Shown: positions 6,521 to 44,000 of the stretch, in pieces
How the letters are laid out: every line of letters begins with the position of its first letter
How positions within the stretch are numbered: the first letter of the stretch is position 1
Origin: Oopsacas minuta
Lineage: Eukaryota > Animalia > Porifera
Assembly (NCBI GenBank): GCA_024704765.1
Contig: JAKMXF010000319.1
Span: 220,303-284,302, forward strand
DNA length: 64,000 nucleotides
Reading direction: 5' to 3'
Notes under the pieces: model-generated
Seen by the model: the letters and a program-made list of their open reading frames with translations, nothing else
The model's database searches: none
What the model was told of the DNA's origin: nothing
Program-made: the position numbers and the translations under genes

Positions 6521-7909
6521 TCACAGTATAGATTGAAAGAACTTCACATAGTCTGCCTGGGGTATCTTTGCTCGGCTTGCATGTACACTTACAGCTTCAT
6601 CTCCAGGATACATTACACCACGACCAATTTCCATCTTCCCAAGAAGTGGGTCATACTTGCTTTCTCCGTTCAATGCCTTATCAGCCAGTATTTTACCAAA
6701 CAGAGGAACAAATTTCATAGCCCAACCAGATGTGTACAGCACAATACGTTTGTCTGTTCCAGTTAGGAAGTCAAGAACAAAGCCAGGGTCCCCAGAGGAG
6801 TTCGTATTTAAGGCAAATCCAGCAACACATGTTGCAATGGTTTCAGTATTTAACTCTGGTTGTAGATCTGGCATGGATTGTCTGACAAAATCTTGGGTAA
6901 ATCGAAGAGCATCTTCATCAACAGGTCTCGAATCAATTGGAGGTGGCTTTCCGTAAAAGTTAAAAGTAGATTTAGAGGTGAAACCTGGCGCAACTCTGCA
7001 TTTACCGGAATATTCATCCTTATTAGTTGGGAAGCCATAATATGTATTTGCATCTATAGCATCTCCTGGTTCATGGTCCTTTGGAGGGGCAAAATAAATC
7101 CACACTGGCCAATTTTCGCTTATAGTTTGATTAGGAGAGTCATTATGGAGAGAAAAGTAGTTGGAACACCACAGATAAATTACAATTCCCATTCTTTGTT
7201 CAAATGGAGGGTGCACTGTTTCTAAGAGCTCATTGATGAAGACACTCGGTGTCATGATAACTTTCTTTCCCGAATATACACTTAAATCGCCTGCAGTTAC
7301 TGTAATATGAGAACTTATTGAGTAATCAACTTTTGTTACCTTCGTATTCTCCAATAAGTCACAGTTACTGCTTGCCTTTAACATTTTTAGCAGAGACTTT
7401 ATAAGTTCAAGAACATTGATTGAACCACCACCATCCCCAGGCACCAGTAGTGCACTAAAATTTTCGCTATCAGTAACTGCCCCACTGATGAACGGGAATT
7501 TTTGCCGAATCTCTTCAGGATTTTTGTAATAGCAATAATCTTGACTTAATTCTTTGAGATTTGTTACTGCCTTTTCTATATTACCCTCTGCAGTAGTAAC
7601 AGAACTATCACCAAACCACAATACACCAGTAAACTTCACTAATTTAGGATTGTTAGTTTCGTCGATTAATTCGTGCCACAATCCACGCGTTTCGATTGCT
7701 AACTGACAGAGATAACGTTCTGAATAACAGATTCGCCATTGCCTTGAATACCCTGGACTAGAAGAATAATCGTTATGAAAAGTAAACTGCTCCAAAAGCA
7801 GTACTTTCTTGTTCCTCTTCACAGCACATTCGTAAGCTGCAGCCAATCCAACAGGACCACCTCCCACAATAATCACATCATACAGTTGTGTTGGATCTTT
7901 CGCTGCCAT
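6521..7909 (-). CDS. FAD-dependent oxidoreductase, monomeric sarcosine oxidase / pipecolate oxidase (DAO) family, 462 aa, intronless
   Basis: Rossmann motif VIIVGGGPVGLAAAY. SSSPGYSRQWRICY aligns with MSOX GSHHGDTRIIRHAY. TIATCVAG carries the Cys at the position of the MSOX covalent flavin attachment. SGWAMKFVPLFG aligns with SGHGFKF. No signal peptide. Confidence 0.88.
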   Translation of the reverse strand: MAAKDPTQLYDVIIVGGGPVGLAAAYECAVKRNKKVLLLEQFTFHNDYSSSPGYSRQWRICYSERYLCQLAIETRGLWHELIDETNNPKLVKFTGVLWFGDSSVTTAEGNIEKAVTNLKELSQDYCYYKNPEEIRQKFPFISGAVTDSENFSALLVPGDGGGSINVLELIKSLLKMLKASSNCDLLENTKVTKVDYSISSHITVTAGDLSVYSGKKVIMTPSVFINELLETVHPPFEQRMGIVIYLWCSNYFSLHNDSPNQTISENWPVWIYFAPPKDHEPGDAIDANTYYGFPTNKDEYSGKCRVAPGFTSKSTFNFYGKPPPIDSRPVDEDALRFTQDFVRQSMPDLQPELNTETIATCVAGFALNTNSSGDPGFVLDFLTGTDKRIVLYTSGWAMKFVPLFGKILADKALNGESKYDPLLGKMEIGRGVMYPGDEAVSVHASRAKIPQADYVKFFQSIL

Positions 7910-8879
7910 CTAGAAGCTAGTTAACTGCTAATTGGTTGTGGTTTTACAGTTCAACTGGTTTGGGTAAATGTGGTTCAATGTTGGATGTGTCGGAAAAGAC
8001 AGTAGAACTTTGTTAGTACGTACACATTCGAAATTAATACACTTTATCTTATGTACGTATTGAGTGATATTGTAGGGACCTGATTTTACATATATTTTTC
8101 ATATTATCCCGACAAGGTTTGTCAAATATCAATATCGGTTAATCACCGATTCTATACGATATATCGGTGCCAAACCTTGATCCGAAAATTCGCATTAGTG
8201 TGTTCGTAACTTAGTAGTAATGAGGTTCTGCTGTAATAAGGAACATAGTAAAATGTACAAGCAAAGAAGCAAAAATATAATTTCTAGATAATTATGTGAG
8301 TTCGGAAGCAGATGAAAAATATATTTTTAGTTAAAGGCCAATTGTTAGGTAGATATGAAAATATGTTCAAAATTCTAAAGCTCACAATAATTTCTTTATT
8401 TCGAGATAAAGAATGGATATAAACGCCAGAAATTGGTACGAATACAATTGTTGTTCTGGAAAGTATATCTCTTGTTACAAGAGAGTTTGGAAATGCTATG
8501 TAATATTGTTTGATACAGGTATGACTTCTATTGGTCAACTGCCAATTACTAGAGGCAATGTCAGGAGTCTATAACATGATCAATCCCGTTAGTGTTTCGA
8601 GACACTTTGACTTTTAGCCAACGCTGTTATTATGTAAACGAAGGAACCCAAACTAGAGACATACCTCCGCAATAAGAGATTGAAATATTTAACCTTAAGT
8701 AATGAATTAACACTCATAATTGTTTTAACAGGTTGGTATTCGCAAAACTGCATTACAATAATCAATTGAATCTCCATGATCACAAACTTCCAATTGTTAT
8801 ACTTTACTCCAACATATTTGGCACGTATTGAAATATGAAGAAAGAAAGAAATTGAAAGAGAACGCAATGTTAGATTACA

Positions 8880-9823
8880 TCAAAATTTCCTGTTTTTTAT
8901 CAAGAAAGGTTCTCTTGATACTGAACTCGCGCAAGCTTTGATCTTCATTTCGATAGGGTAATGCTCGCTGATTGCAAGCGATTGTGATAAATCTTTTCCT
9001 AAAGCTAAACTGAAATTGTATACGTGTATATCTGTAACTTCTAACGCGATCGACTTATATAAAATCAAATTATCATAAGTACATGAAATGTTGCGATATA
9101 CCGAAGTACTATTCGCGCCTTTTTTTAACCCAAACGAGAACGCAGGATCTGTATTGAAGGAGAGCTTTTGAAAATCTTCATCTGAGAGGTAGCTACAGTC
9201 TGCATTTAGATTCCCCAGGATAATCCCGTCAGTCGTCCCAAATGAAAGTAATCAGAACGAAACGTAAACAAATACAAATCTTGAATTTCATTGAATGTAT
9301 TCTCAGGAGCTGTATGTGTAGCTTGTAGCCAAAACGAATTACAATTTGAGCACTTAGATGGCATGAAAAGTACTGAAAAAGGTGACCTCACGAAACTAGC
9401 CCTATAAGTTGGAAACTGATGGAAATCAAGCACGTCGACTTTGGAGGGCTTATATAGGAAACTGTATTGTTCGGGGTTAACCTTGCCTAATCGAATACTA
9501 ATAACTTGCTTATAACAATCCGCCAAGGGGACAGAAGTATTAAGTGTGCGTAGCAATTTGTTCGTGACATTCTTGACTGAATCATCTGGATCTCTTAACC
9601 CGATTAGCAAAACAACATCATACCTCTTTATTATTGTTACTATGGACTGTAACACGCTGTTATTTTGAATTCTGCTGCAATCGATACGATCAAAACTAAA
9701 TGTAGCTACATTTAGGATGGGACATTCGGCATTGTTTGGCACAAATGGTCCATATTTGAAAGCACACACGTGATAGAATAACGGGAAAACAACTATCAAA
9801 AGTGGTAGGAACATTATTTCCAA
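8880..9823 (-). CDS. Secreted DNase I-like protein with substituted metal ligands; one frameshift at ~9237-9239 (about 314 aa if repaired)
   Basis: Signal peptide, then KRYDVVLL, LGKVNPEQYSFLY, FVRSPF and ATHTAP in ORF 9206-9823. In the shifted frame come IILGNLNADCSY, SCTYDNL and AISEHYPIE, running to TGA at 8880. Adding one base to the CCC run at 9237-9239 fuses the two frames with no stop. Confidence 0.85.
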
Positions 9824-10180
9824 TATATCTAGCTAAGGTTATGAATTGACAATAAACACAATAAAATTATATGATTTGCTAGACTAGATAAACGATTAAC
9901 CGAAGACCGTAGAAATGGAGAAATACTGGTATGTATAAGGCACAAATATCCAGTTACGCTAATAAGTATTCAATTAACAACGCCTGCATAAACCGACACT
10001 CGTTGAGATATGAAACTTGCATCTATTTACCAAATTGTCGGATTTTGCAGATGAATTTGTATTATGAGAAGCTATTCTAGATCAGAAACAATTTCGGGTT
10101 ATATACCCTGCCCAGACAATAGTATTCAGTCATTGATGGTCAATCCAGTAAACATTATGATTGAGAGTATGCCTAATGTT

Positions 10181-10534
10181 AAATCCATTATATCAAACAT
10201 CTATGCATTTCGAAGAGATTTGAATTCTCTAAAGTCTAAATGGGTTATGGCTTACAATCCCGGACATATTTTGTAATCTCGGGATTTCGTTATTGGTCGT
10301 TTTCTAGAGTTTCGGTATTCTTAGGGCTTAGAAGTATATCGATTTGATACGTTGAATTGAGATGCAGGTGTAATCCTATGGTTTTGCTTGTAAGATTGCA
10401 AACCAATCCCATTCTCATACTACAATTAACCGATTACGGTCGAATTGTTACATTCGTACAAAAAGGAAGACTAAAATTATATAACTTCGTTTTAACCAAT
10501 TCGCCCACTCAAATCGAGATTTCAGTACCTTATT
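10181..10534. repeat. Second copy of the 5954-6344 block, 3' of LAAO copy A
   Basis: Direct sequence match to 5954-6344, without the fold-back insertion. Confidence 0.9.
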
Positions 10535-12983
10535 GACGTCATTAAATCACACATTTTCCCGGCCGTATTCGGTCATAGACATTTGCTACTAAATTCGGAA
10601 TCTCAGGATTGTAAGCTCCAAAAGGAATCTATCAGATCCATAAAATTTATGTATTTCATGGATGTTTCATGAATTTGATTTGAATATTCACATTCAAAAT
10701 GGATATAGATTGGATATGGATCCATAATCGTGTGGGAAATGGATTACGGAGTGTATTTAGATTATAGTTTGTATCCATCCAGTGGTGCCTCTGGTCATGA
10801 GTTGGAAATATTTGGCATCAGTAAAAAATATCTAAACTGGAAGTCTGTATACTGAGGTTACAATACGCGGAATGCAACTATGACATGGGAGATACGCTGA
10901 AGTTTTACTGTATTGGCCCATCAAAAATAGGGGAGATTATTAGTATTTGTATGGAAACTTTACCATTGCCTGATTACTTTTGTTGAGTAGGGTAGGTCAA
11001 CCGGATTATACAGGTGTCTGTTTATGAAGGCCCCATGTACACCAAATAGAAAACGATTAATCATATCATATCACTAAAAATCATTACAAATACCAATATA
11101 TTCAATACAATAGATAACAAATTCCATCTCTAAAAAAGCCTAATCCCAGCACTCAAATGTTTGAACTTAAGTAATGAATTCAAAGCACACACATATAGTG
11201 TTCCTATACACTCACTAGAGCTCACACACGCACCCATTAGAAATCTCCAGATTGCGTGAGATATTCTAAATAAGAATTGGTTTGAGTCAATGACCCATCC
11301 ACCCATTCCTGGACAAGTGAATATGATTCTCCAATAATACCAATGTTAGGCCCTAACACATTGAACATCCCAGGAGAAACTATACTATCATTAGAAAATA
11401 CCTTCCATGCGTGACAAGAATCACCAAAACGCGGTTCTGTCCAGTGAGTGTATGTGGCTAGAACTGGATCAGGAATATTAATGAGTGGTTCCATGGGGGT
11501 CACATCTCTAGGGCTTCCTTTTTTGAAATTGGACCTTTGGAATAATTGCGCTAATTGATCCATGGCAACTACAACAACTTGTTCTTTGGCTAAAACACTG
11601 TGAAGTGGAACTTTTACATTGTCTTTCGGCTGATAATCCTTACCAATCGATTGCATAGAATGCCAGTAATAACTATTGTCATAGTCACAATAAATAGTTA
11701 ACGATCCAGGATCTTCGTATGCCTTCAGTCGTTCTGCAGGTTCTTTGATCGGATTAAATATATACACTGTACCAAGCTTTAAATCCGTATAATTCGGACC
11801 ACTATCAATTCCCAATATGGACCACCATTGCTTTTCAAAATACAAATTGATTTTTGTAAGGGATTCAGAGATTACGGAATCGACATATGGTGAAAATTTA
11901 GTGTCTGCCATCCATTCGTTACTTGAAGGTAAAGTTTGCAAGGCTAATTTGGGTAAAGCAAGTACACATCTTTTGGATCTGATAGTTTTTGCTGTGATTT
12001 ATTCGGATCATTTCTGTCAATATATTCAATACGAATTGGAAAACTTTGGCCAACATCTTCATCAAGTTTCACTAACTCAGATAGTAAATTGACTTTTACT
12101 CCATTGTTTGTGATTTTTTGGCAAAGCCTTTTTGGTATTTCATCATAACCATATTTAAGAGTAAAAAAATTGGGGCTTGAGGTGAAGTCAAGGTTGGATT
12201 GGAATCCGAATCCAGCATTTGCATTACGATTGAATAAACTTTTGAATCCAAGTGATATCTCAATCATTTTGATCGTTTCATAGGAAAGACCCATAAAACG
12301 CAGTAGAGACCCAAAATCCCATTTATATAATTCGATATTGTCAACCTTCCATTCTAATCTAACATGTTGCCATTGTTGTGGAGTAAATGGTTGTTCTCCT
12401 GGTGGATCCTGCATCATGCGAATTTTATCGAATACATCATTTAGTATAGCGAATGGATCCGCATAATTCTCTTGCTCTGCTGCACTCAAGCCGGTGTTAT
12501 ACAAGTCAAACCACACTTTAGATTCATCAGCTTGGCCAAGTGTAAAGCGAACACCTCTAATGAAGTTCAAATTATATTTGTTTCCCATTGAGAAAGGAAC
12601 AATTTCTTTCTCCAATCCTAATTCTATAGCTAATTTATAGGTCTCCCTATTGTTGTAAAAGCGCATTCCACCTTCTTCTTGTTTGATGGTTTTCCCATTG
12701 ATTGTTACAAGATTACTTTCCAACAGCCCACCAATGCGGTCCAGTTTTTCTATAATACATATGGTCTTTTTGGGATATTTCTCGTTTAATTTGTATGCGC
12801 AATAGAGTCCAGAAACTCCTGCGCCTGCAATTAGGATGTCATAGGTTTGTTCTGCAGTTGCCATTTTTCTCCGTTATAATGTCACGATCAGTTACTAAAC
12901 AAGAAGATAGTCTTTACTCATATTTTGAGTTGTTAATTATTTCTTGAATAAATCACTTATTAATGATCTTTAGTACTAAAGGT
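10355..12983. repeat. Left arm of a 2.63-kb inverted segmental duplication (partner 21802-24432)
   Basis: Reverse-complement identity read from aattgagatgca (10355 / 24432) through the whole LAAO gene to ctaaaggtt (12983 / 21802). Confidence 0.95.
11237..12864 (-). CDS. Flavin-containing amine oxidoreductase, L-amino-acid-oxidase-like, copy A (542 aa if the 1-nt deletion at 11986-11990 is repaired)
   Basis: Motifs ILIAGAGVSGLYCA, EKLDRIGG, EEGGMRF and C-terminal IGESYSLVQEWVDGSL. The frameshift is an A5 run where copy B has A6. No signal peptide and no introns. Confidence 0.88.
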
Positions 12984-13147
12984 TAATTACTCATAGAGTA
13001 ATTAGTAATTATCTATAGGCAGGGCTGCAGTGGGTATCGGAATTCCCATGGGTGACTTATTTGCTATATTCCCGACATCTATATGAATATTCAACACACT
13101 TATTCGGATAAAATGAACAGTTTGTGAAATATCATAATTATCATGAC

Positions 13148-14247
13148 CAGGCCCGGTGGAAGCTCGAGAGAGGTGGGGCAGCCTTGAATTGTGATGATCG
13201 CAGAGTAAATAAAGTTAATTTAATGGGATCGAGAACCCATCTAATATACATTACGAGAACAACTCCCCTAGAGATTACATTTGTTCTCAATGCAAAATCA
13301 AAGTTGAGCTTAAGTTTTGGCAGTTCAAACTAAGTGATCAAATAAATATATCTAATTCTGTAATCTATATAATATAATCTCAATTGTTGTCTGTCTGTTT
13401 ATTTGTTTGTTTGTTTGTTGTTGTTTGTTGTCTGTTGTCAAGGAAAAGATTTACGATATGCAATTTTGAAATTGTCGCATAACTATGTATTATCGTGTTA
13501 ACCAAGGAAGTAAATAGAATTCAAATAAAACTCAACTCATGCTGAATCCGATTTTCACACTTTTGGATGGGTCATAATTAAATTTATTGTTGTATTTAGG
13601 AATATAAAGTAAACAAATTTCAAAATTAAGGTACAAGTAGAATCATACTTTCAACGGCTATGCTGGGGTAATCGAGTGTGCTGAGTCTGAATATGGCATT
13701 GTAAACAAAATCTATAATATTAACTCTTAATTGTTGTTTGTTTGTTTGTTTGTTTGTCCGTTGATATGTAAATATATTGTTGTTTTATGAATATACAGGA
13801 AACAAATTAGCAAAACTCAAAATTACATAGATATTTGCTTTCAACGGCTACAAAAGGGGTTGATCTTACAAAATATTTCAATAATATATGTGCCATAATC
13901 GCATATTTGTGAATTACGTTGTTGTGAATATATCAATATTATAATACTCAAAGGGCCCGTCAATTTGGAGAATAATGGACACCTCGAGGCGTAATGCGGG
14001 GAGTTCATCGCGAAGCGACGAGCCAAAGGCTCGTAGTAATTTACAACAAAATTGTAATTATACTATAGAAGATCCTCCGGCTTGAACTCGGTGCCAAACA
14101 TATTACTCAAATATCAAACACTCAATTATATCATAAGATGACAAAATATTATCGCGAACCATGCACGCGAAATGTATATACCAAAAGATTTACATAAAAA
14201 GTGGGGCGGCTCAGGCCGTCCCAGCCGCCCCGGCTCTGCCGGCCCTG
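13148..14247. mobile_element. Non-autonomous hAT element carrying a nested Helitron-like insertion
   Basis: TIRs caggcccggtggaagc / ggctctgccggccctg, with an 8-bp TSD ATCATGAC at 13140-13147 and 14248-14255. Confidence 0.85.
13364..14033 (+). mobile_element. Non-autonomous Helitron-like element, family A
   Basis: 5' end A|TCTATAT...ctcaattg followed by (GTTT)n, a second internal 5'-like end near 13710, and a 3' hairpin tcatcgc-gaa-gcgacga followed by gccaaaggCTCG|T. Confidence 0.7.
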
Positions 14248-16005: not shown

Positions 16006-16106
16006 CAGTAGAGTCTCGTTAATACGAACACGGTTAAGGAGTAACTGCAAATAAGGAGTATGAATTTTGGCAGTCCACTGGTGTATGTATTAACGAGAGT
16101 CTACTG
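16006..16106. mobile_element. Tc1/mariner/pogo-type MITE
   Basis: 20-bp TIR cagtagagtctcgttaatac / gtattaacgagagtctactg (1 mismatch), with TA on both sides. Confidence 0.85.
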
Positions 16107-18455: not shown

Positions 18456-19415
18456 ATGGCAAGTGTAGGTTGTGTTATTGCGCCACCAACCGAGACCCAA
18501 CCGCCGGATTTCGATAGTCCTTTGATCATAGAACCAAAACAGCCTCAGAATGTGCTAACGTTGGGTAATTTGGCTCCACTTGTTGGCACCTGGGTTAACG
18601 CGCCTAACACATTTGGGTACAATGTGATGCCACTACCTCAAATGTATGATGAGACAGGAGGTGTAATGGTACCTTCGTACATCCTGAAGAATAATCAATA
18701 TTATGAAGAGATGACGTTTTCAGCAATCAACGGTGTAGCTCCTAATCGCGGTGGTCAAGGTACTCAGGTTTGCAATACGCTGTTTTATGAACAGCGAGTT
18801 TATCTTAGTGAAAATCCTGATCAAAATAAATTACTGCATGCAGAAAACGGGTCTTGGCTGAATTTCACTAGTAGGGAACAATTTCTTGGGCCATATGGAC
18901 AGACACCTCTTCCCAATAGTACCCCTCCAGTTTTACTATATCAAATTGGGAAGCAAATGTCAGTGCCTCATGGTAACTCTATTCTAGCTGTTGGTACGTC
19001 TAGTATTGATAAAAGTGGCCGACAGCCTGATATTCCCGATATTCCATTGATTAAACCACAAGGTGTTAATACATCTCAATACGATGATCAATCAGTAGGG
19101 AATCCGAATGTAACATATACATCAAATCCAAATCTAGTCATACAGCAGGGTCTAACAGGAGAAAAGATCGCTGAATACATCAAACTTGAAGTTGATTCAA
19201 AACCAGTAGCTCCGCCAACAAACATTGGATTCGAGCAAAAGTTTTCAAAAGTAACCAGCTACAAGCAAACTGTGTGGATTATAGCTAGTAAAGATCTTGG
19301 GCAGTTTGACCGTTTACTATACTCGCAGACAATTGGGTTACAATTGATAATCAATGGTACTAAAGTGGAATTCCCTCATGTTACTTCGAATGCGCTAGTT
19401 CGGAAAACTTTCTAA
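18456..19415 (+). CDS. Nitrobindin-like / bacterial-type heme-binding beta-barrel protein, 319 aa, intronless
   Basis: First ATG is at 18456. Motifs LAPLVGTW, PNRG, LHAENGSW, SVPHGNSILAVG and C-terminal FPHV, the candidate proximal His. The family assignment is from recalled motifs only. Confidence 0.7.
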   Translation: MASVGCVIAPPTETQPPDFDSPLIIEPKQPQNVLTLGNLAPLVGTWVNAPNTFGYNVMPLPQMYDETGGVMVPSYILKNNQYYEEMTFSAINGVAPNRGGQGTQVCNTLFYEQRVYLSENPDQNKLLHAENGSWLNFTSREQFLGPYGQTPLPNSTPPVLLYQIGKQMSVPHGNSILAVGTSSIDKSGRQPDIPDIPLIKPQGVNTSQYDDQSVGNPNVTYTSNPNLVIQQGLTGEKIAEYIKLEVDSKPVAPPTNIGFEQKFSKVTSYKQTVWIIASKDLGQFDRLLYSQTIGLQLIINGTKVEFPHVTSNALVRKTF

Positions 19416-21801: not shown

Positions 21802-24432
21802 AAACCTTTAGTGCCAAAGATCACTAATAAGTGATTACTCAAGAAATAATTAACAACTTAAAATATGAGTAAAGACTATCTTCTTGTTTAGTAACTGATC
21901 GTGACATTATAACGGAGAAAAATGGCAACTGCAGAACAAACCTATGACATCCTAATTGCAGGCGCAGGAGTTTCTGGACTCTATTGCGCATACAAATTAA
22001 ACGAGAAATATCCCAAAAAGACCATATGTATTATAGAAAAACTGGACCGCATTGGTGGGCTGTTGGAGAGTAATCTTGTAACAATCAATGGGAAAACCAT
22101 CAAACAAGAAGAAGGTGGAATGCGCTTTTACAAAACTAGTGAGATCTATAAATTAGCTATAGAATTAGGATTGGAGAAAGAAATTGTTCCTTTCTCAATG
22201 GGAAACAAATATAATTTGAACTTCATTAGAGGTGTTCGCTTTACACTTGGTCAAGCTGTTGAATCAAAAGTGTGGTTTGACTTGTATAATACGGGTTTGA
22301 GTGTAAAAGAGAAAGACAAATATACGGATCCATTCGCTATACTAAATGATGTATTCGATAAATTCGCATGATGCAGGACCCACAAGAAGAAGCACCATTT
22401 ACTCCACAACAATGGCAACATGTTAGATTAGAATGGAAGGTTGACAATATCGAATTATATAAATGGGATTTTGCGTCTATACTGCGTTTTATGGGTCTTT
22501 CCTATGAAACGATCAAAATGATTGAGATATCACTTGGATTCAAAAGTTTATCCAATCGTAATATAAATGCTGGATTCGGATTCCAATCCAACCTTGACTT
22601 CACCTCAAACCCCGAGTTTTATACTCTTAAATATGGTTATGATGAAATACCAAAAAGGCTTTGCAAAAGAATCACAAACAATGGAGTAAAAGTCAATTTA
22701 CTATCTGAGTTAGTGAAACTTGATGAAGATGTTGGCCAAAGTTTTCCAATTCGTATTGAATATATTGACAGAAATGATCCGAATAAATCACAGCAAAAAA
22801 CTATCAGATGCAAAAGATGTGTACTGGCTTTACCCAAATTAGCCTTGCAAACTTTACCTTCAAGTAACGAATGGATGGCAGACACTAAATTTTCACGGTA
22901 TGTCGATTCCGTAATCTCTGAATCCCTTACAAAAATCAATTTGTATTTTGAAAAGCAATGGTGGTCCATATTGGGAATTGATAGTGGTCCGAATTATACG
23001 GATTTACAGCTTGGTAGCGTGTACATATTTACTCCGATCAGAGAACCTACAGAACGAGGGAAGGCATACGAAGATCCTGGATCGTTAACTATTTATTGTG
23101 ACTATGACAATAGTTATTACTGGCAATCTATGCAATCGATTGGTAAGGATTATCAGCCGAAAGACAATGTAAAAGTTTCACTTCACAGTGTTTTAGCCAA
23201 AGAACAAGTTGTTGTAGTTGCCATGGATCAATTAGCGCAATTATTCCAAAGGTCCAATTTCAAAAAAGGAAGCCCTAGAGATGTGACCCCATGGAACCAC
23301 TCATTAATATTCCTGATCCAGTTCTAGCCACATACACTCACTGGACAGAACCGCGTTTTGGTGATTCTTGTCACGCATGGAAGGTATTTTCTAATGATAG
23401 TATAGTTTCTCCTGGGATGTTCAATGTGTTAGGGCCTAACATTGGTATTATTGGAGAATCATATTCACTTGTCCAGTCCTGGGTGGATGGGTCATTGACT
23501 CATACTAATTCTTATTTAGAATATATCACGCAATCTGGAGATTTCTAATGGGTGCGTGTGTGAGCTCTTAGTGAGTGTATAGGAACACTATATGTGTGTG
23601 CTTTGAATTCATTACTTAAGTTCAAACATTTCAGTGTTAGTGTTACGCTTGTTTAGAGATGGAATTTGTTATCTATTGTATTGAATATATTGGTATTTGT
23701 AATGATTTTTAGTGATATGATTTGATTAATCGTTTTCTATTTGGTGTACATGGGGCCTTCATAAACAGACACCTGTATAATCCGGTTGACCTACCCTACT
23801 CAACAAAAGTAATCAGGCAATGGTAAAGTTTCCATACAAATACTAATAATCTCCCCTATTTTTGATGGGCCAATACAGTAAAACTTCAGAGTATCTCCCA
23901 TGTCATAGTTGCATTCTTCGTATTGTAACCTCAGTATACAGACTTCCAGTTTAGATATTTTTTACTGATGCTAAATATTTCCAACTCATGACCAGAGGCA
24001 CCACTGGATGGATACAAACTATAATCTAAATACACTCCGTAATCCATTTCCCACACGATTATGGATCCATATCCAATCTATATCCATTTTGAATGCGAAT
24101 ATTCAAATCAAATTCATGAAACATCCATGAAATACATAAATTTTATGGATCTGATAGATTCCTTTTGGAGCTTACAATCCTGAGATTCCGAATTTAGTAG
24201 CAAATGTCTATGACCGAATACGGCCGGGAAAATGTGTGATTTAATGACGTCAATAAGGTACTGAAATCTCGATTTGAGTGTACGAATTGGTTGAAACGAA
24301 GTTATATAATTTTAGTCTTCCTTTTTGTTACAAATGCAACAATTCGACCGTAATTGGTTAATTGTAGTATGAGAATGGGATTGGTTTGCAATCTTACAAG
24401 CAAAACCATAGGATTACACGTGCATCTCAATT
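21802..24432. repeat. Right arm of the inverted duplication
   Basis: Reverse complement of 10355-12983. Confidence 0.95.
21922..23548 (+). CDS. L-amino-acid-oxidase-like flavoprotein, copy B (542 aa if the 1-nt deletions at 22360-22362 and 23287-23290 are repaired)
   Basis: Same motifs as copy A. It has A3 where copy A has A4, and C4 where copy A has C5. The repaired length of 1629 nt equals that of repaired copy A. Confidence 0.88.
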
Positions 24433-24456
24433 ACATTGTCTCTAACGACACTGTAA

Positions 24457-32000: not shown

Positions 32001-35000
32001 AAATTTGCATATTAACTGTGTACTCAGGAAGTTGTAAAGACTTCACTTAGATATTCAAAATTTTAAATTTGTTCCTAGATGTATCTAACTCACCTAATGC
32101 CAAAATTCAGATTTCTAGCATTTCCCAACTCTTCTATTACTTCAACCCAAATCCAAAATATACACTCACCATTGTCACGCTGTCCTTAAACCTGAATTAT
32201 CTTTGAAAAATATGGCTCGTGGAAATGAGGTACTAAACTACTATGTATTTTTACCGTAGAATTGAATGGGAATACTTTGGAAATCGATTCCATGCGAATA
32301 TAGGAAATAATTGGCATATCAAAATTCCCGCCTTTGTCCTAGCTTAAAATGCATTTTATCTCTGGATCTATCAAGTTTTGCTGTTTAGAAAGTATTCTTG
32401 ACTGATGAAAAGTCAGTAATTTTGGTTATATTGGTAATAAAATTTCTATAACTAACAGGGTTGTTGACTTATGAATTCCCTTAATAATGATAGAATCAGA
32501 GTAATGGGAAAAACTACAAATGCTATAATTTCCATTATTGTCCATGGTGTATGAAAACTGTATTTTCATTACTATTATGTAAACCAAAATTGTTACGATT
32601 ATCCACAAAATCTATATTTTGAGAACTTCACATGATTGACGTTTAGGGACACTGAATTATTTGCGTTTTATTATACTTTAGGATACACTTCAAATCTTTT
32701 AAAATTTCCGCTCTTCAAATGATGATTATTATTTAAGCAAAAGTATTAAATCTACGAAGGACGATATGAATAATTCTTCAAGAATTTCGTCTTTAGTCTA
32801 ACCCATAATTACATTCATATTACTACTTACATAAATAGATCAAGTATTCAATTGAAACCTGAGAACAATTACGATTTGTTTCTAACAATTTACAAGTCAC
32901 GAGCCTTTGGCTCGCCGCATTGCGCCTCGTGGTATCTGTTATTCTCCAAATTGACGGCCCCTTTGAGTATTATAATATAGATATATTTAGAACAATGTAA
33001 TTCACAAATGTATTTATATGGCTTATATATTATTGAATTATTTTGTAGGATTACGCCCTTTGTAGCTGTTGAGGGCAAGTATCTATGTAAATAGGGCCGG
33101 ATTAGCCTTAAGCCAAATAAGCCCTGGCTCAGGGCCTCACGGCCCTCACCAATTCGACGGAAAAATAGCTTGGCATAGCCAGTCTCAGTCCCCACACTGC
33201 ATTTGTTGTTTGCTCATAAAGTGTAGTCATTTTGAATGCGAACGCCACAAAAATCAATCCTAATTGAATGACAAGGCAGTCAATATGAAAACATCAAAAC
33301 AGCGTCTATATCCACTATATTCGATTGTTAAGCTTCATTTCTTCTTTTCTAAATATCTAATGCACCATGCTTAATAAATGGATTTGTTAGTTACATATAG
33401 GCTTTCAGTTTATATTAAGCGAGGCCAGGGAGTGAGGTGTGAGCCTCTTTGAAATGCTTGCTATTCTGAGCAGGAATTATAGAGAGGGCCTCATAGTATA
33501 CTTGGCTTAGGGCCCCATCGAGTGCTAACCCGGCCCTGTATGTAAATTTTTGGATTTTGCAAATTTGTTTCCTTTATGTACCTAAAAGTAAACAAATATC
33601 CGCTAAATGTTGTTTACAATATGATATTCGGACTCAGCGTACTCGATTACCCCAGTATACCCATCGAAAGCATGTTTCTACCACAATTTGAAATTTGTTT
33701 ATGTTATATTCATAATAACAACAATAGATTTACATGTGAGAAACTTGAAAATGCGAAATTCGGATTCAGCGTACTTAGCTACCCCTGCATAGCCGTTTAG
33801 AGCAAGGCTGTACGTGTATTTTGAGATTTGCTAATTTGTTTACATAATATTCATAAAAACAACAAGAAATTTACATATGATTAATCCAAAAGTGTGAAAA
33901 TCGGATTCAGCATGTTAGATATATTTAGTGAACTTTTATTGAATCTTATTTACTTCCTTGATAAACACGATAAATACATAGTTGTGCGGCAATTCAAAAT
34001 TGCATACCGTAAATCCTTTCCTTGACAACGGACAAACAAACAAACAAACAAACAAGAATTCAGATTTAATAATTTATAAGTCATTAAATGACTTCTATAA
34101 CGGACATAACAAAATTTATCTGTTCAATCGAGTGTCACTCATTATTGTTACTCAGTTCACTTTCGGGCAGATTAGGTCAGCAAGATGCATAGCTATGGCT
34201 GATATGGCACCTGTTGGATTCCACGAACCGCCACTTGGCCAGAGAGAGGCTCCAGTGAGGTACACATTATCTACTCCCTTGAAACGGTAGTCAAGATCCA
34301 CAGGAGATCCCGTATCCTTTCCAAGCCGCATCGTGGAAGCTTCGTGTACGATGCATGGCGCTCGAATCATGTCAACCGTGGGTCGTCCTTTCGCCCAATC
34401 ACCAGACGATCCACCATGAGTGTGCCAATACTCCAATCCAGAAGGGGCCAAAATGTCGAGCATCTGGAAACTTGACTCTTCCATAGTTTCCCATACCTTA
34501 TTGTCTTTACTATTGGCCACCACTTGAAGAGTGACATTAGTGGTGACATCATCATCCTCATTCTTTCGGAACCAATTTTGATCATTATCGTAATCGAGCT
34601 CACCAAGGACAGTGCACACAAAGATTACATGATCTGTTGATGTTAATAGCTGCTGCATTGTTGGGGCTGCAACTACATCTGGCAAGTGACGTATGAAATC
34701 GAAGAGATTTTTCTTGGGAGTGTTATCGTATATTGCAGAAAGTTGTATGTGAAACTGGCTAGTGGATGACAGATCTCTTCCAGCTATGTAGTTCGCTGAC
34801 ATCTCCATGTTTCCAAATTTTCTATAATTGCAGAAGGTGTTAGCAGGAACTCGAGCAAAAATGGAACTGATGAAGTGGGCGGTGAATCGCTCGCCAATAT
34901 TGATCATCGAAGGAAAGTCGTGTTTGGAGAAGGAATTGAGCATGAGAGTGGTGGGTGGAAGCGCACCCATGGCAAGGATGACTTTAGCATTGCCGAGAAC

Positions 35001-38000
35001 AAAATCTCCCTTAGAAGTCTCCAAGACAACTGCTTTTCCTTCTTTGTGGTGGATCATTTTTACAACGCAATTGATGACTATTTTCATTGTCGAATCCTTG
35101 ATTGAAGCTTTTTCTTGGCCCACACTCAAGCTATAGAGTTTACTCAACAGAGGTCCTGGCACTGAGAATTTCTTGAAGTTGATATTTCTACAAAAACAAA
35201 TATCGCACTAAAACTATATATACGTCGTGAAGTTAGCAGCAAATTCCAGCAGTGAAATATGTGCACAACTTAGCACTAAATAATTCTATTAATTCTCTGT
35301 CAATTCATCTGAAATTTGGTCAGTAGCTTTGTCTGGAGTGGAGCATTTCCTGCGTTCAATAATTCATCCCTATTACACCTACTCTTGCCACAATCACATC
35401 GCAAAATTTGTATTACTAAAACACCATATAGTCAGGGCTGGCTGTTAGCCCTAAAACCGTGACAAGTCAGGTAAATGCACAAATTTGGTTACAATGGGGT
35501 GTGCTTAAACCTTTAGAGGGGAGCCAGTTCTTCGAAGATCAGGGGGTGTGATGCACAATCAGTTTTATGCGCCACTTTGAACACACTTTGAAGGTGTTTA
35601 CATGAATGTAATTCATCCAGTTTGAATCGAAACGAATTTTAGTGTCGATATTCGTAATCACCAAAATGTTTACGTCTTTTGAGTGGCCACTCGTATATGT
35701 TTAGAAATATGAATTATTGAATGTAGGAAATGCACCACTTCAGATAAAGGTACTGACCAAATTTCAGGTGAATAGAATGAGAAATTGACAGAATTATTCA
35801 GTTTCGAGTTATGCTCATATTTTACTGCAGGAATTCTCTAACTTCACACTCACTAAGTCTATTAACACCACGAAAGTAGAATACTGCCTCTTAGTTTGGA
35901 CAAATACAGCAACCAAACATCATATATCCTTGCTGTAAATGTTGAATATACCATGAACTCTTTATACTGGTTTGAATAGGTTGGCTTTAGGAAATTATAC
36001 AATACAATCACTACAAATCACCTGTACATGTGTGCTTCAACAGCAAGTGGGGCTGGCATCCATCTTGTGATTGTTGAAATTTTGCTTGAAATATCTTTCA
36101 ACCTTTCCTGTATATCCGACTGGAGTGCCCCGTAGATAGTATCTTTACCTTGCTCTGTTTTGGAGATTTGATCAGCTGGGATTACATTGAGCAACTGTTT
36201 CACTGCAGGAAAGTACTTGTGTACAACCTTTTTCGTTTCTTTCGGCCATTCCTCCATCTCTTCATCTGTAGGCTCAGGACACCAACCAGACCAAAAAGTT
36301 GACTTCCCACCAAAGAAGTTGTTCACGCCATGTTGCCATTTGATGTACTGGCCTTCATGGGTCTTCTTGGTAATCCTCCAAGGGAATGTCTCACCTATGC
36401 CATCCATTGTCATTACGAATGGAGGAGGAAGATTCTGGAAGTGCTCTGGGTGGTAGTAGGTACCCCTTTCAATAATCATAATTTTAGCATTGGGGTTGTT
36501 TTTGAGCGCTTGATCAACAAATGCAAGTGCACAAAATGAAGACCCAATGATAACATAGTCGAAGTTTCCTTTTCTTCGCTCGACATCCCACTCTTTATCG
36601 TTCAAGAAGAAGATATCATTCATAATATCATCTGGTCTGATGTCCTGAGGTCCAGGTACTGGGTAGCCAAATTGAGGGACTTCTCCTTGAGCCATTTTCG
36701 TTTTCCTATCAGCAATAGCTAGTGATATGGACTGCATGAAATATTTAGTTCGTGTACATTTTGGTTTGGGCTAAATAGATAAAATTTTCTAGTCGGTTTG
36801 TACCAATTTTATAAACTGACTAAATATTTCAGGCATTTTAGTTGAGGGTAGATAAGTGGTTTCTCAGGACAGAAAAAATCGAACATTTTGTTTCTACACT
36901 TGGAAACATGATGTTAAAATTTTCTGTCCTGGAAAACCACTTCCTTACCCTCTTAATTCATCCGGACCTAATGCTTGTTTTGTATATTACTATATTTCTA
37001 ATTAGCTAAGAATTAGCCAACAGCGAGGTTTTTGTCTATTTATAGTTGTGCCCGTCGTCTATAGTGCAGTTAATTTTACGCATTCAAATGATTATATCTA
37101 TGCTACAATAATTATTGCTAGATGTTGAGAGATGTCCCCTCTATGTACACAAATTACATAAAGGTAAACAAACTATTTATTAATCTATATTTTTCAATCC
37201 CAATTGTTGTTTGTTTGTCCGTTGTCAAGGAAAGGATTTACGGTATGCAATTTTGAAATTGTCGCATAACTATTTATTTATCGTGTTTATCAAGGAAGTA
37301 AAGAGAATACAATAAAAGTTCACTAAATATATCCAATATGCTGAATCCGAATTTCGCACTTTTGGATTAATCATATGTAAATTTATTGTTATTTTTATGA
37401 ATATAAAGTAAACAAATTTCCAAATGGTGGTAGAATCATACTTTCAACGACTGTACTGGGGTGATCGAGTATGCTGAGTCCGAATATGGTATTGTAAACA
37501 ACATATTGTGAATATTTGTTTACTTTTAGGTTAATAAAGTAAACAAATTTCAATATTGTTGTAGAATCGTACTTTCAACGGCAATAATGGTATACTCGAG
37601 TATACTGAGTCTGAATATTGTAACGACATCAACATTATTCAATCTCAATTGTTGTTTGTCTGTATATTTGTACGTTGAATACCTCGAGGCGCAATGCGCC
37701 GAGTTCATCGCAAAGCGACGAGCCAAAGGCTCGTAACATTAATATTCCAATTTTCTGATTCTACATACCAAAAAATCAAAAGATAAATTACATAAATAGT
37801 GCGAAAATATGTAGGATTGGAATGGAACCATTTTTTCAAAACATATTTTCCACTCTTGTTTGGGTATCGCTTCGATCACTGCGAAAAGTGCCCCCTCCAG
37901 CTCCTCATTAGGTTGAAAATCTCCTTCCATGAAATTGATATTTGATCGTTGGGAACAACCAGACGTCGCATGGGGCTAGGACCGGACTGTAGGGTAAGTG

Positions 38001-41000
38001 TGGCAACGTTTTGAGCCCAGAATATTCCAAAAATTCACGAGTCCAGAGTGCCGTGTGGTATGATGTTTATCATGATGAAGCAGTATTCCTCTTACAGTCT
38101 TTTCACGCTCTTTATGATGATTAGAAATTTTGATTCTCTTCAAATATTTCTTACAAATTTTTACATATTCAACCAACAACCTTAGGACACATTATATTAA
38201 TGAAATATCATTTGAAATAACACTCGGAGGCATTGGCTATGTATATTCATTCAAATATCTCTGTGGTTTGAGGACATTTACATTTGAAAGTATAAATGGG
38301 GAATGGAGGGTTATCAGGAGACTCCCGACCCGACCTTACAGTTCTACTGTATTTGATATATGAATTTATAATGAGGTATTACCCGTCATCAAACGATGCG
38401 CCGCCGCTGAAGCTATATATATTTGAAAGAAGACAGAAGTTAGCTATGTTTGTTTGTTGGTTTGTTTTATTGATAATTTATATCGTCATGATTACTAGGT
38501 GAAGAAGAAATTGTATATCCGTACTTGAAGTAGATCTTACAAAGTTGAAAAAGCTTTTGAAAACATATCGATTTCACTACTAACCAATTAGTGAATGAAT
38601 TCACGTGGCCTTGAGATTTGTCTATCTTGTTTAAACCTTTGACCGCCCATAATATATTACACTTCTACTTTCTAGGAATGAAGTTAATATTACAATGCAT
38701 AAATGATAATGCTGAACTCCACCTAGCTTATCTAACATGACACAATCTAGCATATATATTATCCTATCAGTCATTTTGTCTGCTTACAAATATTACAGAG
38801 ATGGTACTAGCATTGATATGATATGTTGCTAAATTTCTAATTATATTGGAGATATAATAAATCTAAAAGTTCCATAGTTTTATGGAATATTACTGAATGA
38901 ATGTGTCCTTTGCTTAATTCCAAACATATTGATTCTATTTCGAATGTGTTTATTCAAATTATACAGGTAACAATTTGACAATAATGGGAACTGTATTTTA
39001 TCTAGCCCTCACTTCAAGGTGGTGTTATATTCCCCACTCAGATACGAATCTGAATACATGCGGCACACCAGAGAAAGTTTCTTATCCCCCACTTAGGAGG
39101 TGGTTAAGAAATTGAACGGTTCTTCTCGACGAAACAGACTGTGGTCTATCCACCATCAAGTGATTGCCCAGGCACACGTTTCAAATTTTATTAGTAAGCA
39201 GATCGAACACAAAGTACGTCATACATAAACCATAAGGCCTATGCTAGTTTTAGAACTTAGAATTGATAATAATTGATCACCAGTTATACTTGTGGTATTG
39301 ATAGCAGCGTGTCATTGACAATATTTATTTAACGAACCTTTGGCTCGTCGCTTCGCCATGAACTCGGTGCATATCTATTATTCTCCAAATTTACGGCCCA
39401 TCTGAGCATTATTTAGGACAATATAATTAACAAATATACGTATATTGTATATATGTTATTGAATTAATTTGTAAGATAAACCCCCTTTGTAGCCGTTGAG
39501 AGCAAGTATCTACTTAAATATTGAGATTTTGCTAATTTGTTTACTTTATGTTCATAAAAACAACAATAAATTTACATATGATTTATCCAAAAGTGTGAAA
39601 ATCGGATTGAACATGTTCGATATATTTAGTGAACTTTATTGAATTCTATTTACTTGATAAACACGATAAATACAGTTACAAAATTGCATACCGTAAATCC
39701 TTTCCTTAACAACGGACCAAACAAACAGACAAACAGACAACAATTGAGATTTAATAATATAGATTATTCGATCTCAATTGTTGTCTGTTTGTCTGTCCGT
39801 TGTTAAGGAAAGGATTTACGGTATGCAATATTGAAATTGTCGCATAACTATGTATTTATCGTATTTATCAAGGAAGTAAATAGAATTCAATAAAACTTCA
39901 CTAAATATATCGAACATGCTGAATCCGATTTTCACACTTTTGGATTAATCATATGTAAATTTATTGTTGTTTTTATGAATATAAAGTAAACAAATTATCC
40001 AAATCTCAAAATATACGTACAGGCTTGCTCTAAACGGCTACACATATACACAGGGGTAACTAAGTACGCTGATTCCGAATTTTGCATCAAGTTTCTCATA
40101 TGTAATTTATTGTTGTTTTTAAGGCAATATAGTAAATAAATTTTCAAAATTGAGGTAGAATCATACTTTCAACGACTATACTGGAGTAATAGAGTATGCT
40201 GAATCCGAATATGGGATTGTAAACAACATATTGTGAATATTTGTTTACTTTAGGTACATAAAGTAAACAAATTTCCAAAAAGGGGTATAATCATACTTCC
40301 AACAACTATACTGGGGTAATCAGGTATGCTGAGTCCGAATATGATATTGTAAATAACATCTATATTGTTAAATCTCAATTGTTGTTTGTCTGTTTGTTTG
40401 TCCGCTGATATGTAAATATATTGTTGTTTTTATGAATAGGCTTGCTCTAAACAGCTACCCAGGGGTAACTAAGTACTCTGAATCAGATTTTCGCATTTTC
40501 AAGGTTCTTATGTGTAAAATTATTGTTGTTTTTATGAATATCTGTAAACAAATTGCCAAATGTCAAAATTTACGTAGATACTTGCTCTCAACGGCTACAA
40601 AGGGGAGGTTGGTCTTACAAAATATAATTTAATAACATATATGTGAATTTCATTGCTCTAAATATATCTATATTATGATACTCAAAGGGGGCCGTCTATT
40701 TAGAGGATAATGGATACCTCGAGGCACAATACGCCGAGTTCATCGCGAAGCGACGAGCCATAGGCTCGTTACATTAAAATTACTACTTACCTACAAAAGT
40801 ACATCAAGTATTCAATTGAAACCTGAGAACAATTACAATTTGATTCCAACAAATTTTCCAAACCATTAAATGATTTCTATAACGGACATAACAAAATTTA
40901 TCTGTTCAATCGAGTGTCACTCATTATTGTTACTCAGTTCACTTTCGGGCAGATTAGGTCAGCAAGATGCATAGCTATGGCTGATATGGTACCTGTTGGA

Positions 41001-44000
41001 TTCCACGAACCGCCAGTTGGCCAGAGAGAGGCTCCAGTGAGGTACACATTATCTACTCCCTTGAAACGGTAGTCAAGATCCACAGGAGATCCCGTATCCT
41101 TTCCAAGCCGCATCGTGGAAGCTTCGTGTACGATGCATGGTACTCGAATCATGTCAGCCGTGGGTCGTCCTTTCGCCCAATCACCAGCCGATCCACCATG
41201 AGAGTGCCAATACTCCAATCCAGAAGGGGCCAAAATGTCGAGCATCTGGAAACTTGACTCTTCCATAGTTTCCCATACCTTATTGTCTTTACTATTGGCC
41301 ACCACTTGAAGAGTGACATTAGTGGTGACATCATCATCCTCATTCTTTCGGAACCAATTTTGATCATTATCGTAATCGAGCTCACCAAGGACAGTGCACA
41401 CAAAGATTACATGATCTGTTGATGTTAATAGCTGCTTCATTGTTGGGGCTGTAGCTACATCTGGCAAGTGACGTGTGAAATCGAAGAGATTTTCCGTGGG
41501 AGTGTTATCGTATATTGTAGAAAGTTGTATGTGAAACTGGCTAGTGGATGACAGATCTCTTCCAGCTATGTAGTTCGCTGACATCTCCATGTTTCCAAAT
41601 TTTCTATAATTGCAGAAGGTGTTAGCAGGAACTCGAGCAAAAATGGAACTGATGAAGTGGGCGGTGAATCGCTCGCCAATATTGATCATCGAAGGGAAGT
41701 CGTGTTTGGAGAAGGAATTGAGCATGAGAGTGGTGGGTGGAAGCGCACCCATGGCAAGGATGACTTTAGCATTGCCGAGAACAAAATCTCCCTTAGAAGT
41801 CTCCAAGACAACTGCTTTTCCTTCTTTGTGGTGGATCATTTTTACAACGCAATTGATGACTATTTTCATTGTCGAATCCTTGATTGAAGCTTTTTCTTGG
41901 CCCACACTCAAGCTATAGAGTTTACTCAACAAAGGTCCTGGCACTGAGAATTTCTTGAAGTTGATATTTCTACAAAAACAAATATCGCACTAAAACTATA
42001 TATACGGGTGTGAGTCAGCAAATTCTAGCAGTGAAATATGTGCACAACTTAGCACTTAATAATTCTGTGGAACTTGGTCAGTACCTTTGTCTGGAGTGGT
42101 GCATTTCCTATATTCTATAATAATCCCTATCACAACTATTCTTGCCACATTGACATCGGAAAATTTGTACTACCAAATCCCCTAATAGTCAGGGCTGGCT
42201 GTTAGTCCTGAACCATGCCAAGTCAGGTAAAAGCACAAAATTTAGTACAATGTTACTGTAGGGTGTGCTTGAACTTTTAGAAGGGGAGCCAGTCCTTCGA
42301 AGATCAGGGGTGTGATGCACAATCAGTTTTATGTGCCTCTTTGAACACATTTTGAAGGTGTTTACATGAATGTAATTCATCCAGTTTGAATCGAAACGAA
42401 TTTTAGTGTCGATATTCGTAATCACCAAAATGTTTATTTACGTCTTTTGAGTGACCACTTGTATATGTTTAGAAATATGAATTATTGAATGTAGGAAATG
42501 CACCACTTCAGATAAAGGTACTGACCAAATTTCAGGTGAATAGAATAAGAAATTGACAGAATTATTCAGTTTCGAGTTATGCTCATATTTTACTGCAGCA
42601 ATTCTCTAACTTCACACTCACTGAGTCTATTAACACCACGAAAGTAGAATACTCCCTCTTAGTTTGGACAAATACAGCAACCAAACATCATATATCCTTG
42701 CTGTAAATGTTGAATATACCATGAACTCTATATACTGGTTTGAATAGGTTGGCTTTAGGAAATTATACAATACAATCACTACAAATCACCTGTACATGTG
42801 TGCTTCAACAGCAAGTGGGGCTGGCATCCATCTTGTGATTGTTGAAATTTTGCTTGAAATATCTTTCAAGCTTTCCTGTATATCCGACTGGAGTGCCCCG
42901 TAGATAGTATCTTTACCCTGCTCTGTTTTGGAGATTTGATCAGCAGGGATTACATTGAGCAACTGTTTCACTACAGGAAAGTACTTGTGTACAACCTTTT
43001 TCGTTTCTTTCGGCCATTCCTCCATCTCTTCATCTGTAGGCTCAGGACACCAACCAGACCAAAAAGTTGACCTCCCACCAAAGAAGTTGCTCATGCCATA
43101 CTGCCATTTGATGTACTGGCCTTCATGGGTCTCCTTGCTAATCCTCCAAGGGAATGTCTCACCTATGCCATTCATTGGCATTACGAATGGAGGAGGAAGA
43201 TTCTGGAAGTGCTCTGGGTGGTAGTAGGTACCCCTTTCAATAATCATAATTTTAGCATTGGGGTTGTTTTTGAGCGCTTGATCAACAAATGCAAGTGCAC
43301 AAAATGAAGACCCAATGATAACATAGTCGAAGTTTCCTTTTCTTCGCTCGACATCCCACTCTTTATCGTTCAAGAAGAAGATATCATTCATAATATCATC
43401 TGGTCTGATGTCCTGAGGTCCAGGTACTGGGTAGCCAAATTGAGGGACTTCTCCTTGAGCCATTTTCTTTTTCCTACCAGCAATAGCTAGTGTATGGCCT
43501 GCATGAAATATTTAGTTCGTGTACATTTTGGTTTGGGCCAAATAGATAAAACTTTCTAGTCGGTTTGTACCAATTTTATAAACTGACTAAATATTTCAGG
43601 CATTTTAGTTGAGGGTAGATAAGTGGTTTCTCAGGACAGAAAACCATGGAAACAAAATGTTCGAATTTTTTCTGTCCTGGAAAACCACTTACCTATCCTC
43701 TGAGTCTATCCGGACCTAATGCTTGTTTTGTATATCACTATATTTCTAATTAGCTAAGAATTAGCCAACAGCGAGGCTTTTGTCTATTTATAGTTGGCCC
43801 GCCGCTATAGTGCAGCTAATTTTAAGCATTCAAATGAACATATCTCTGCTTACCATTATTTTTGATAGATGTTGAGAGATGTCCCCTTTATCTATACAAA
43901 TTCCATAAAGGTAAACAAAATGTTTATTATTTGCATTAATATTGCAATTTTCTGATTCTACATACCAAAAATTCATAAGATAGCCGTTGACAGCTACATT

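Follow-up and report, generated by a model that had tools for sequence, protein, structure and literature searches.

Gene content of the locus

We analysed 64,000 nucleotides of the glass sponge Oopsacas minuta (GenBank assembly GCA_024704765.1, contig JAKMXF010000319.1, positions 220,303 to 284,302 of the forward strand; hereafter the window), in which flavoenzyme genes surround the gene of a heme protein. An earlier note, made from the letters alone, had read five flavoenzyme genes of three unrelated families and one nitrobindin-like heme protein in this region, and searches against Pfam, NCBIfam and the PDB recovered all six in the same places. They comprise one NikD-like flavin oxidase, two copies of an L-amino-acid oxidase (LAAO), one heme-binding protein of the FMP/nitrobindin-like type (NB) and two GMC oxidoreductases (Table 1). 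The flavoenzymes do belong to three families, but these are not fully unrelated, as a fold binding flavin adenine dinucleotide (FAD) is common to all. The six genes are interleaved with a DNase I-type gene, a PDZ exon and repeats, in agreement with the mixture of animal genes and transposons noticed before.

According to our analysis, the stretch consists of two separate things, which are an oxidative core at 6.5-24.3 kb and a GMC tandem pair nearby. We consider it probable, though well short of certain, that the core is a sponge-encoded oxidative module of the bacterial-operon type, in which two LAAO copies enclose the NB gene, the NikD-like gene lies downstream of LAAO copy A, and the GMC pair is not coupled to the rest.

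Table 1. Coordinates of the oxidase cluster and associated features (positions of the window)
Feature	Position	Strand	Evidence or remark
NikD-like flavin oxidase (MSOX/DAO family), intronless, 462 aa	6521..7909	-	PF01266, E 2.4e-24
DNase I-type gene (part), between LAAO copy A and the NikD-like gene	9206..9823	-	Paralog comparison
Inverted duplication, left arm	10458..12951		Repeat pairs I1-I5, 96-98% complementary
LAAO copy A, bacterial-type L-amino-acid oxidase family, ~541 aa	11237..12864	-	PF01593, PF13450
T5 homopolymer behind the copy-A assembly frameshift	11986..11990		Copy B has one base more
NB, FMP-type nitrobindin-fold heme-binding protein, 319 aa, intronless	18456..19415	+	NF040572
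Inverted duplication, right arm	21835..24328		Repeat search
LAAO copy B, three pieces in the assembly (breaks near 22359, 23286)	21922..23548	+	PF01593
PDZ exon	30531-31094		Profile match
GMC oxidoreductase copy 1 (exon 1 36021-36695, exon 2 34152-35189)	34152..36695	-	PF05199
GMC oxidoreductase copy 2, LOD99_6661, 569 aa (exon 1 42789-43463, exon 2 40934-41971)	40934..43463	-	PF05199

The LAAO copies and their apparent frameshifts

The two LAAO copies, which are 98% identical at the DNA level, lie in the arms of an inverted duplication with the NB gene in the 8.9-kb spacer between them. The protein carries an N-terminal GxGxxG motif and the Amino_oxidase domain. Its match to AncLAAO (7c4k) has an E-value of 4.5e-35 for piece A1 of copy A and of 4e-55 for the paralog P0123, the latter also matching L-lysine oxidase at 2.8e-26, and its closest Atlas clusters are all bacterial. 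LAAOs of broad range (E 4e-55) thus stand beside an L-lysine oxidase among the members of the family. In the LAAO tree (all trees in this study are unrooted quick searches) eight eukaryote-type sequences form one clade with a support of 100, apart from 48 bacterial-type sequences, on a long branch whose placement was flagged as possible long-branch attraction.

The assembly splits LAAO copy A into open reading frames (ORFs) of 306 and 234 amino acids by one frameshift and interrupts copy B by two, each being a one-base homopolymer indel. These were checked against contigs of four short-read runs (kind unrecorded) placed on positions 7000-12999. All four runs insert a T after 11985 at full depth, every contig there having the extra base, and the copy-B deletions are absent from the contigs of all four runs at the equivalent sites 11499 and 12426, near which letters of the B type are present. 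There are no in-frame stops in the LAAO copies. As every frameshift falls in a homopolymer and has no support from the reads, they are probably assembly errors; since contigs can lose variants, this is a likely reading rather than a proven one. The runs also differ from the assembly at the homopolymers 9248 and 11216, with two of the four runs showing the one-base difference at 11216 in just a fraction of their depth. Taken with 11985, these mismatches suggest systematic assembly errors that truncate ORFs, the DNase I-type gene included.

Further copies were found on two other Oopsacas contigs. One (L005) carries another set, in which an LAAO and a DNase accompany a broken NikD-like gene, while the other (L004) carries P0123, a divergent and intact LAAO, together with a DNase. 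The NikD-like copy of L005 (2590-3644) is a probable pseudogene, because residues 260-328 and the first 40 residues are absent. The ratio of nonsynonymous to synonymous change (dN/dS) between copies is about 1 for the LAAO pair as well as for the GMC pair. The recent duplications, inverted for LAAO and in tandem for GMC, are real, and the earlier description of the cluster as still expanding holds to that extent.

The NikD-like oxidase

The NikD-like protein has the MSOX/DAO fold from end to end, matching positions 1-352 of the 353 of PF01266. Residues 2-379 of NikD align with residues 7-420 of the sponge protein at an E-value of 1.5e-41, while sarcosine oxidase reaches only 2e-15. The alignment indicates that Cys321, Trp355, Arg53, Lys358 and Glu101 of NikD are retained, with the flavin-linking Cys within IATCVAG and the Trp over the flavin within SGWAMKF, both at the NikD positions. 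NikD converts the lysine-derived piperideine-2-carboxylate to picolinate (PMC4021061).

In the tree, the sponge protein belongs to a 59-member clade with a support of 100 that includes three octocorals, while fungi and bacteria stand apart; five Acropora species join this clade via cluster look-up. Judged by these sequences, both the NikD-like gene and the LAAO gene appear to have a long history in the eukaryote or animal lineages concerned. An ancient transfer of the NikD-like, LAAO or GMC genes would be compatible with the trees, which provide no root for it.

A contig of one run (X4) departs from the genome at 7929, which is 20 bases upstream of the NikD-like start codon, and continues into 18 letters that were not found elsewhere within the window. 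This departure could represent an exon of the 5' untranslated region or a spliced leader.

The heme protein

NB passed the NCBIfam family NF040572 (heme_bind_FMP) with 211 bits (cut-off 150, E 2e-62) and fell slightly under the cut-off of PF08768 (THAP4/nitrobindin-like). We take 'FMP' to stand for Flavobacterium meningosepticum peroxidase. The structural model (pLDDT 85) has nitrobindins as its top solved-structure matches, and Foldseek gave a probability of 1.00 to 2fr2, 2a13 and 3ia8 with TM scores by target of 0.63-0.65. His308, close to the C-terminus, is invariant in 30 relatives and is the presumed iron-binding proximal His. NB thus shares with nitrobindins, the THAP4 heme domain and FMP-type peroxidase the beta-barrel fold and an invariant C-terminal His, but at 319 amino acids it is twice as long as the nitrobindins (~160).

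The nearest relatives of NB are bacterial (41-53% identity), and its best matches lie on bacterial or short contigs. In the tree it falls inside a starred 41-member clade that contains all four proven bacterial sequences. Among the relatives around it are Burkholderia ubonensis and Algicola, as well as two bacterial sequences from metagenomes whose gene surroundings are typical of bacteria. Its sole sister, P0258, is a 1-kb contig. The bacterial clade that holds the sponge protein also holds 15 of the 16 LAAO-linked NBs of the tree. When the trees were compared for a bacterial sister common to LAAO and NB, none emerged, the LAAO branch being long and the NB clade giving no clear sister. Because the sponge NB is nested among bacterial sequences, its transfer is likely. 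We posit that NB is likely a lineage-specific gain from bacteria that came later than LAAO and the NikD-like gene, and the only such gene in the window.

These phylogenies change the picture of the earlier note, which had proposed a possibly horizontally acquired island of microbial type. The LAAO and the heme protein are indeed both of bacterial type. A single acquired island is contradicted, since the NikD-like, LAAO and GMC genes each fall in a eukaryote- or animal-type clade apart from bacteria, an outcome that the note itself had listed as refuting, and horizontal acquisition is retained for the heme protein, which nests in bacteria instead.

Conserved linkage in eukaryotes

An LAAO gene followed on the same strand by a NikD-like gene was also found in two further eukaryote-like assemblies (L003 and L146), and another assembly apparently has both on one contig, as judged from indirect matching. 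In the octocoral Dendronephthya, an amine oxidase of the classical kind, from a subfamily other than that of the LAAO, is encoded 1.7 kb away from the NikD-like gene. In addition, one protein (P0110) is a fusion of a classical amine-oxidase domain with a NikD-like domain.

A similar arrangement may exist outside animals. NCBI names the coral and octocoral relatives of the NikD-like protein after the Dictyostelium 'putative bifunctional amine oxidase DDB_G0291301', which is uncharacterised and which we take to be a fusion of sarcosine-oxidase-like and LAAO-like parts like P0110. Its LAAO half is presumably classical, as in P0110, whereas the LAAO of the sponge is of the bacterial type.

Gene neighbourhoods in bacteria

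Scanning bacterial genomes with an alignment of sponge-type LAAOs yielded 53 loci, 52 of which hold an LAAO ORF. In 20 of these 52, an NB-like gene is close to the LAAO homolog, mostly directly adjacent and on the same strand. These loci span Bacteroidota, Gammaproteobacteria, Actinomycetota, Acidobacteriota and Gemmatimonadota; examples are L025 and L043, the NB of L043 being 47% identical to the sponge protein. The suggestion of the earlier note that an amino-acid oxidase and a heme protein form a unit in microbes is thereby borne out for these very families. One contig of Flavobacteriaceae (L032) shows the order LAAO, NikD-like gene directly after it, second LAAO and NB-like gene. Across eukaryotes and bacteria, linkage is thus kept for LAAO with the NikD-like gene and for LAAO with the NB-like gene, and not for the GMC genes. 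An enzyme dependent on thiamine diphosphate (ThDP) is found immediately beside the LAAO homolog, likewise in 20 of the 52 loci (L013-L061), which fits further processing of a 2-oxo acid.

For the reverse test, we took metagenome loci with an NB-like gene and a length of at least 4 kb, 60 in all. Ten of them contain an LAAO, 20 a PF12902 ferritin-like gene and two a GMC gene of another subfamily. The PF12902 ferritin-like gene is therefore the commonest neighbour of bacterial NB-like genes (L066-L145, L007, L009, L012, L043), and the two together look like an undescribed bacterial gene pair; one of the ferritin-like neighbours has a faint match to VioB. In L080 (15-6963), a NikD-like gene is divergent from a row that consists of a small ORF, a GMC gene, a ferritin-like gene and an NB-like gene. 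Owing to this row, several of the families of the window can be said to co-occur in one bacterial cluster, although the GMC gene there is of another subfamily. Bacterial GMC genes beside NB-like genes (L009, L080) were considered as being of the sponge type and rejected, as the identity was only 42% over 31 residues.

Proposed pathway and its closest known counterparts

We posit the following sequence of reactions, by analogy with NikC/NikD and pairs of the RebO/RebD type. LAAO would deaminate an L-amino acid, yielding hydrogen peroxide (H2O2). If the substrate were basic, for example lysine, the resulting 2-oxo acid would cyclise to piperideine-2-carboxylate. The NikD-like enzyme would then aromatise this cyclic imino acid by oxidation, giving a picolinate-type heteroaromatic acid and more H2O2, while NB would either consume H2O2 as a peroxidase or act on the reactive imine. 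The most concrete guess is that lysine is converted to picolinate, and aromatic substrates are possible as well. The pathway is probably cytosolic, because the translations of all four module proteins are devoid of targeting signals. As the earlier note had remarked, signal peptides and SKL-type ends are absent from all the oxidases and the heme protein. The N-termini begin directly with the FAD motif or lack a hydrophobic leader, and the C-termini read SIL, GDF, KTF and KVN.

Among known systems, NikC/NikD of nikkomycin biosynthesis in Streptomyces resembles the core in the end-to-end alignment of NikD, the conserved flavin-linking Cys and Trp, the carboxylate-binding Arg and Lys, and an upstream enzyme that attacks an amino acid at its alpha-amino group. 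It differs in that the upstream enzyme of the sponge is an oxidase and not the aminotransferase NikC, in the replacement of Asp276 by Gly and in the animal host; the window also lacks a coenzyme A ligase and the later nikkomycin genes. Pairs of a flavin amino-acid oxidase and a heme enzyme are known from RebO/RebD and VioA/VioB. With these and with StaO/StaD, the locus shares an LAAO-family flavoenzyme gene beside that of a heme protein, which in the sponge would likewise handle the reactive imine and peroxide. A PF12902 ferritin-like gene is also frequent where relatives of the window's genes occur in bacteria. The heme partner in the sponge is of the nitrobindin fold and not of the RebD/VioB type, and there is no PF12902 gene in the window. 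Achacin, escapin and aplysianin, antimicrobial LAAOs known from molluscs and fish, are likewise animal-encoded and make H2O2, an activity that is predicted for the sponge enzymes, but they belong to the classical family and are secreted, whereas the sponge proteins are of the bacterial type with AncLAAO as the best match and have no signal peptide.

Several observations weigh against a functional module of this kind. In neither L003 nor L146 did an NB gene turn up within ~10 kb of the LAAO/NikD-like pair (for L146 in the gene list only, with no tblastn), so that the complete trio is seen only in Oopsacas and on one bacterial contig. NB missed the FMP peroxidase equivalog NF040571 with 68.5 bits (cut-off 300), and Asp276 of NikD corresponds to Gly in the sponge protein, where GPDF is aligned with APGF. 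The ThDP enzyme and the PF12902 ferritin-like gene, which are the commonest partners in bacteria, were searched for and are absent from the window; their presence in bacteria hints that the substrate is an aromatic amino acid and not lysine. A dN/dS of about 1 between paralogs fits relaxed constraint. Among the four runs, only X4 has a gene-shaped depth profile, with no joints seen.

Alternative explanations

The oxidases might chiefly make peroxide and ammonia against microbes, in the manner of the molluscan LAAOs, with a secreted DNase I-type enzyme and a peroxidase as partners or for self-protection. Such a defence unit would agree with the threefold co-duplication of LAAO and the DNase I-type gene in Oopsacas, with the hydrophobic N-terminus of a DNase copy, with the S1/P1 nuclease in the bacterial LAAO operon L025 and with recent copies at a dN/dS of about 1, as in fast-evolving defence genes. 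We nevertheless regard it as unlikely, given that no oxidase has a signal peptide while the known antimicrobial LAAOs of animals are secreted and of the classical family, that the conserved pairing and fusion with the NikD-like enzyme points to a two-step conversion rather than to bulk peroxide, and that the pair in L003 has no DNase, just as the list for L146 has no ORF between the two genes. The locus could also be a chance neighbourhood, that is, unrelated oxidoreductase genes close together in a compact genome with no common pathway. Each family has its separate evolutionary history, linkage of the GMC genes to the other genes is not conserved, and the eukaryote-like assemblies other than Oopsacas showed no NB gene next to the LAAO/NikD-like pair, all of which would fit. 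Chance is distinctly unlikely all the same, as three assemblies preserve the LAAO/NikD-like order, with the amine-oxidase substitution in the octocoral and the fusion P0110 in addition. The adjacency of LAAO and NB-like genes in 20 of 52 loci across several phyla cannot be due to chance, because the NB family is so small (263 representatives among 1.8 billion proteins).

Decay is a further reading, with pseudogenes in place of LAAO genes and a relic cluster on its way to being lost, and we rate it as very unlikely. The three frameshifts of the assembly, the dN/dS of about 1 and the L005 copy of the NikD-like gene without residues 260-328 would be expected from decay; yet all the frameshifts are in homopolymers, the four runs carry the extra base at 11985 and show none of the copy-B deletions, and the same runs contradict the assembly at two more homopolymers. 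The absence of in-frame stops and the existence of the intact, divergent P0123 likewise speak against decay. Bacterial contamination or a chimeric assembly might be suspected from the bacterial nature of the nearest NB relatives and of the nearest LAAO Atlas clusters, but this is extremely improbable. GC content is even across the window (33-40%), sponge genes and transposons lie on both sides of the cluster and between its genes, an independent contig of 2457 bases spans 7752-10210 from the oxidase gene to the DNase I-type gene, and a second sponge contig carries the same set. This evidence excludes contamination for practical purposes and, with the spliceosomal intron of the GMC genes, upholds the earlier view that the genes are encoded by the host.

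Possible meaning of the proposed oxidative module

Reading the core as a sponge-encoded module ties three unannotated families into one unit, by way of a conserved gene order, a fusion protein and a recurrent bacterial operon, and locates this unit in a sponge chromosome. It would provide a concrete candidate pathway from an amino acid via a cyclic imino acid to a heteroaromatic acid. It would also offer a first functional context for the uncharacterised FMP/nitrobindin-like heme proteins of bacteria, as partners of flavin oxidases that form H2O2. NB would be a case of a transferred gene that has joined the partner it also has in bacteria. On the practical side, the public assembly appears to break these genes artificially.

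A further step, which we ourselves find rather doubtful, is that the glass sponge makes a heteroaromatic acid itself by this two-oxidase route, for instance picolinate or a unit of the pyrrole-2-carboxylate type. Relatives such as corals would share the LAAO/NikD-like pair, to which Oopsacas would have added NB from a bacterial operon where it was already partnering this oxidase. If true, this would be an animal metabolic gene cluster rebuilt on a bacterial model, and homarine formation in animals would have a candidate route. Homarine is a widespread marine metabolite with picolinate as its precursor. To our knowledge, the animal route to homarine is still unresolved, small-molecule gene clusters are rare in animals, and many sponge and coral metabolites tend to be attributed to the microbes of these animals. 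The homarine paper that we consulted gives no biosynthetic genes. Literature searches returned no paper combining 'nitrobindin' with 'amino acid oxidase' and nothing specific on FMP peroxidase or on gene transfer in Oopsacas.

The GMC pair

GMC copy 2 is a 100% match to P0136 (Oopsacas minuta LOD99_6661). The two copies are 96% identical and arose by tandem duplication of a 6.8-kb unit, and each gene consists of two exons with one GT..AG intron. The model of copy 2 (pLDDT 83) has the general GMC fold, with a Foldseek probability of 1.00 to many GMC enzymes. The pair had been described as pyranose-oxidase-like, which is a weak label. The best fold matches are C-glycoside 3-oxidase and pyranose oxidase (E 5e-20, TM ~0.57), and the catalytic His/Asn pair (His506/Asn548) is kept and invariant in 30 relatives. 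The identity is only 12-16%, however, sequence matches to solved pyranose oxidases are confined to the last 60 residues, and the sponge genes belong to a split, intron-bearing clade of the eukaryote type. Identity as pyranose oxidase was rejected, with 22 bits against the TIGR02462 cut-off of 545 and a marginal lead in the fold search, where other GMC enzymes score almost as well.

In the tree, the Oopsacas genes fall on a 71-member side (support 87) that consists entirely of split eukaryote-type genes, while bacteria form their own clade. The demosponge Dysidea avara is the only other named member of this family and shares the intron position, and the same two-exon layout is present in another species (L006). 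No linkage of GMC genes to the LAAO/NikD-like core is conserved, none being found within ~10 kb of LAAO/NikD-like genes in the other assemblies examined. The closest GMC relatives apparently never share a contig with LAAO/NikD-like genes, according to a comparison of hit lists across assemblies, which is a weak test. The GMC pair is probably not part of the module and is rather a neighbour from a family held in common with a demosponge.

Both GMC copies read GSSFCA at residues 51-56 (43311-43328 and 36543-36560), where at least 90% of the relatives have the FAD-binding motif GSGFCA. Between the copies, synonymous sites of the exons differ by 1.7% and the intron by 6.5%, and there are 23 amino-acid changes but 6 silent ones. 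This pattern could reflect gene conversion in the exons or diversifying change.

The DNase I-type gene and flanking genes

The part of the DNase I-type gene present in the window is 56% identical to the intact paralog on L004, which matches DNase1L3 and DNase I at ~5e-28. The end of its ORF in the assembly is probably wrong, because all four runs insert one A at 9248. A DNase I-type gene accompanies LAAO in all three Oopsacas copies (window 9206-9823; L004 12474-13322; L005 12105-12672). In the bacterial LAAO/NB operon L025, an S1/P1 nuclease gene follows directly after LAAO (9790-10587). This association of oxidase and nuclease in two domains of life may be due to chance.

Towards the edges of the window, the flanking sponge genes include a protein kinase exon (2095-2763) on one side, and a carbohydrate-type sulfotransferase (PF03567, 60817-62031) and a fragment of a hAT transposase (63539-63952) on the other.

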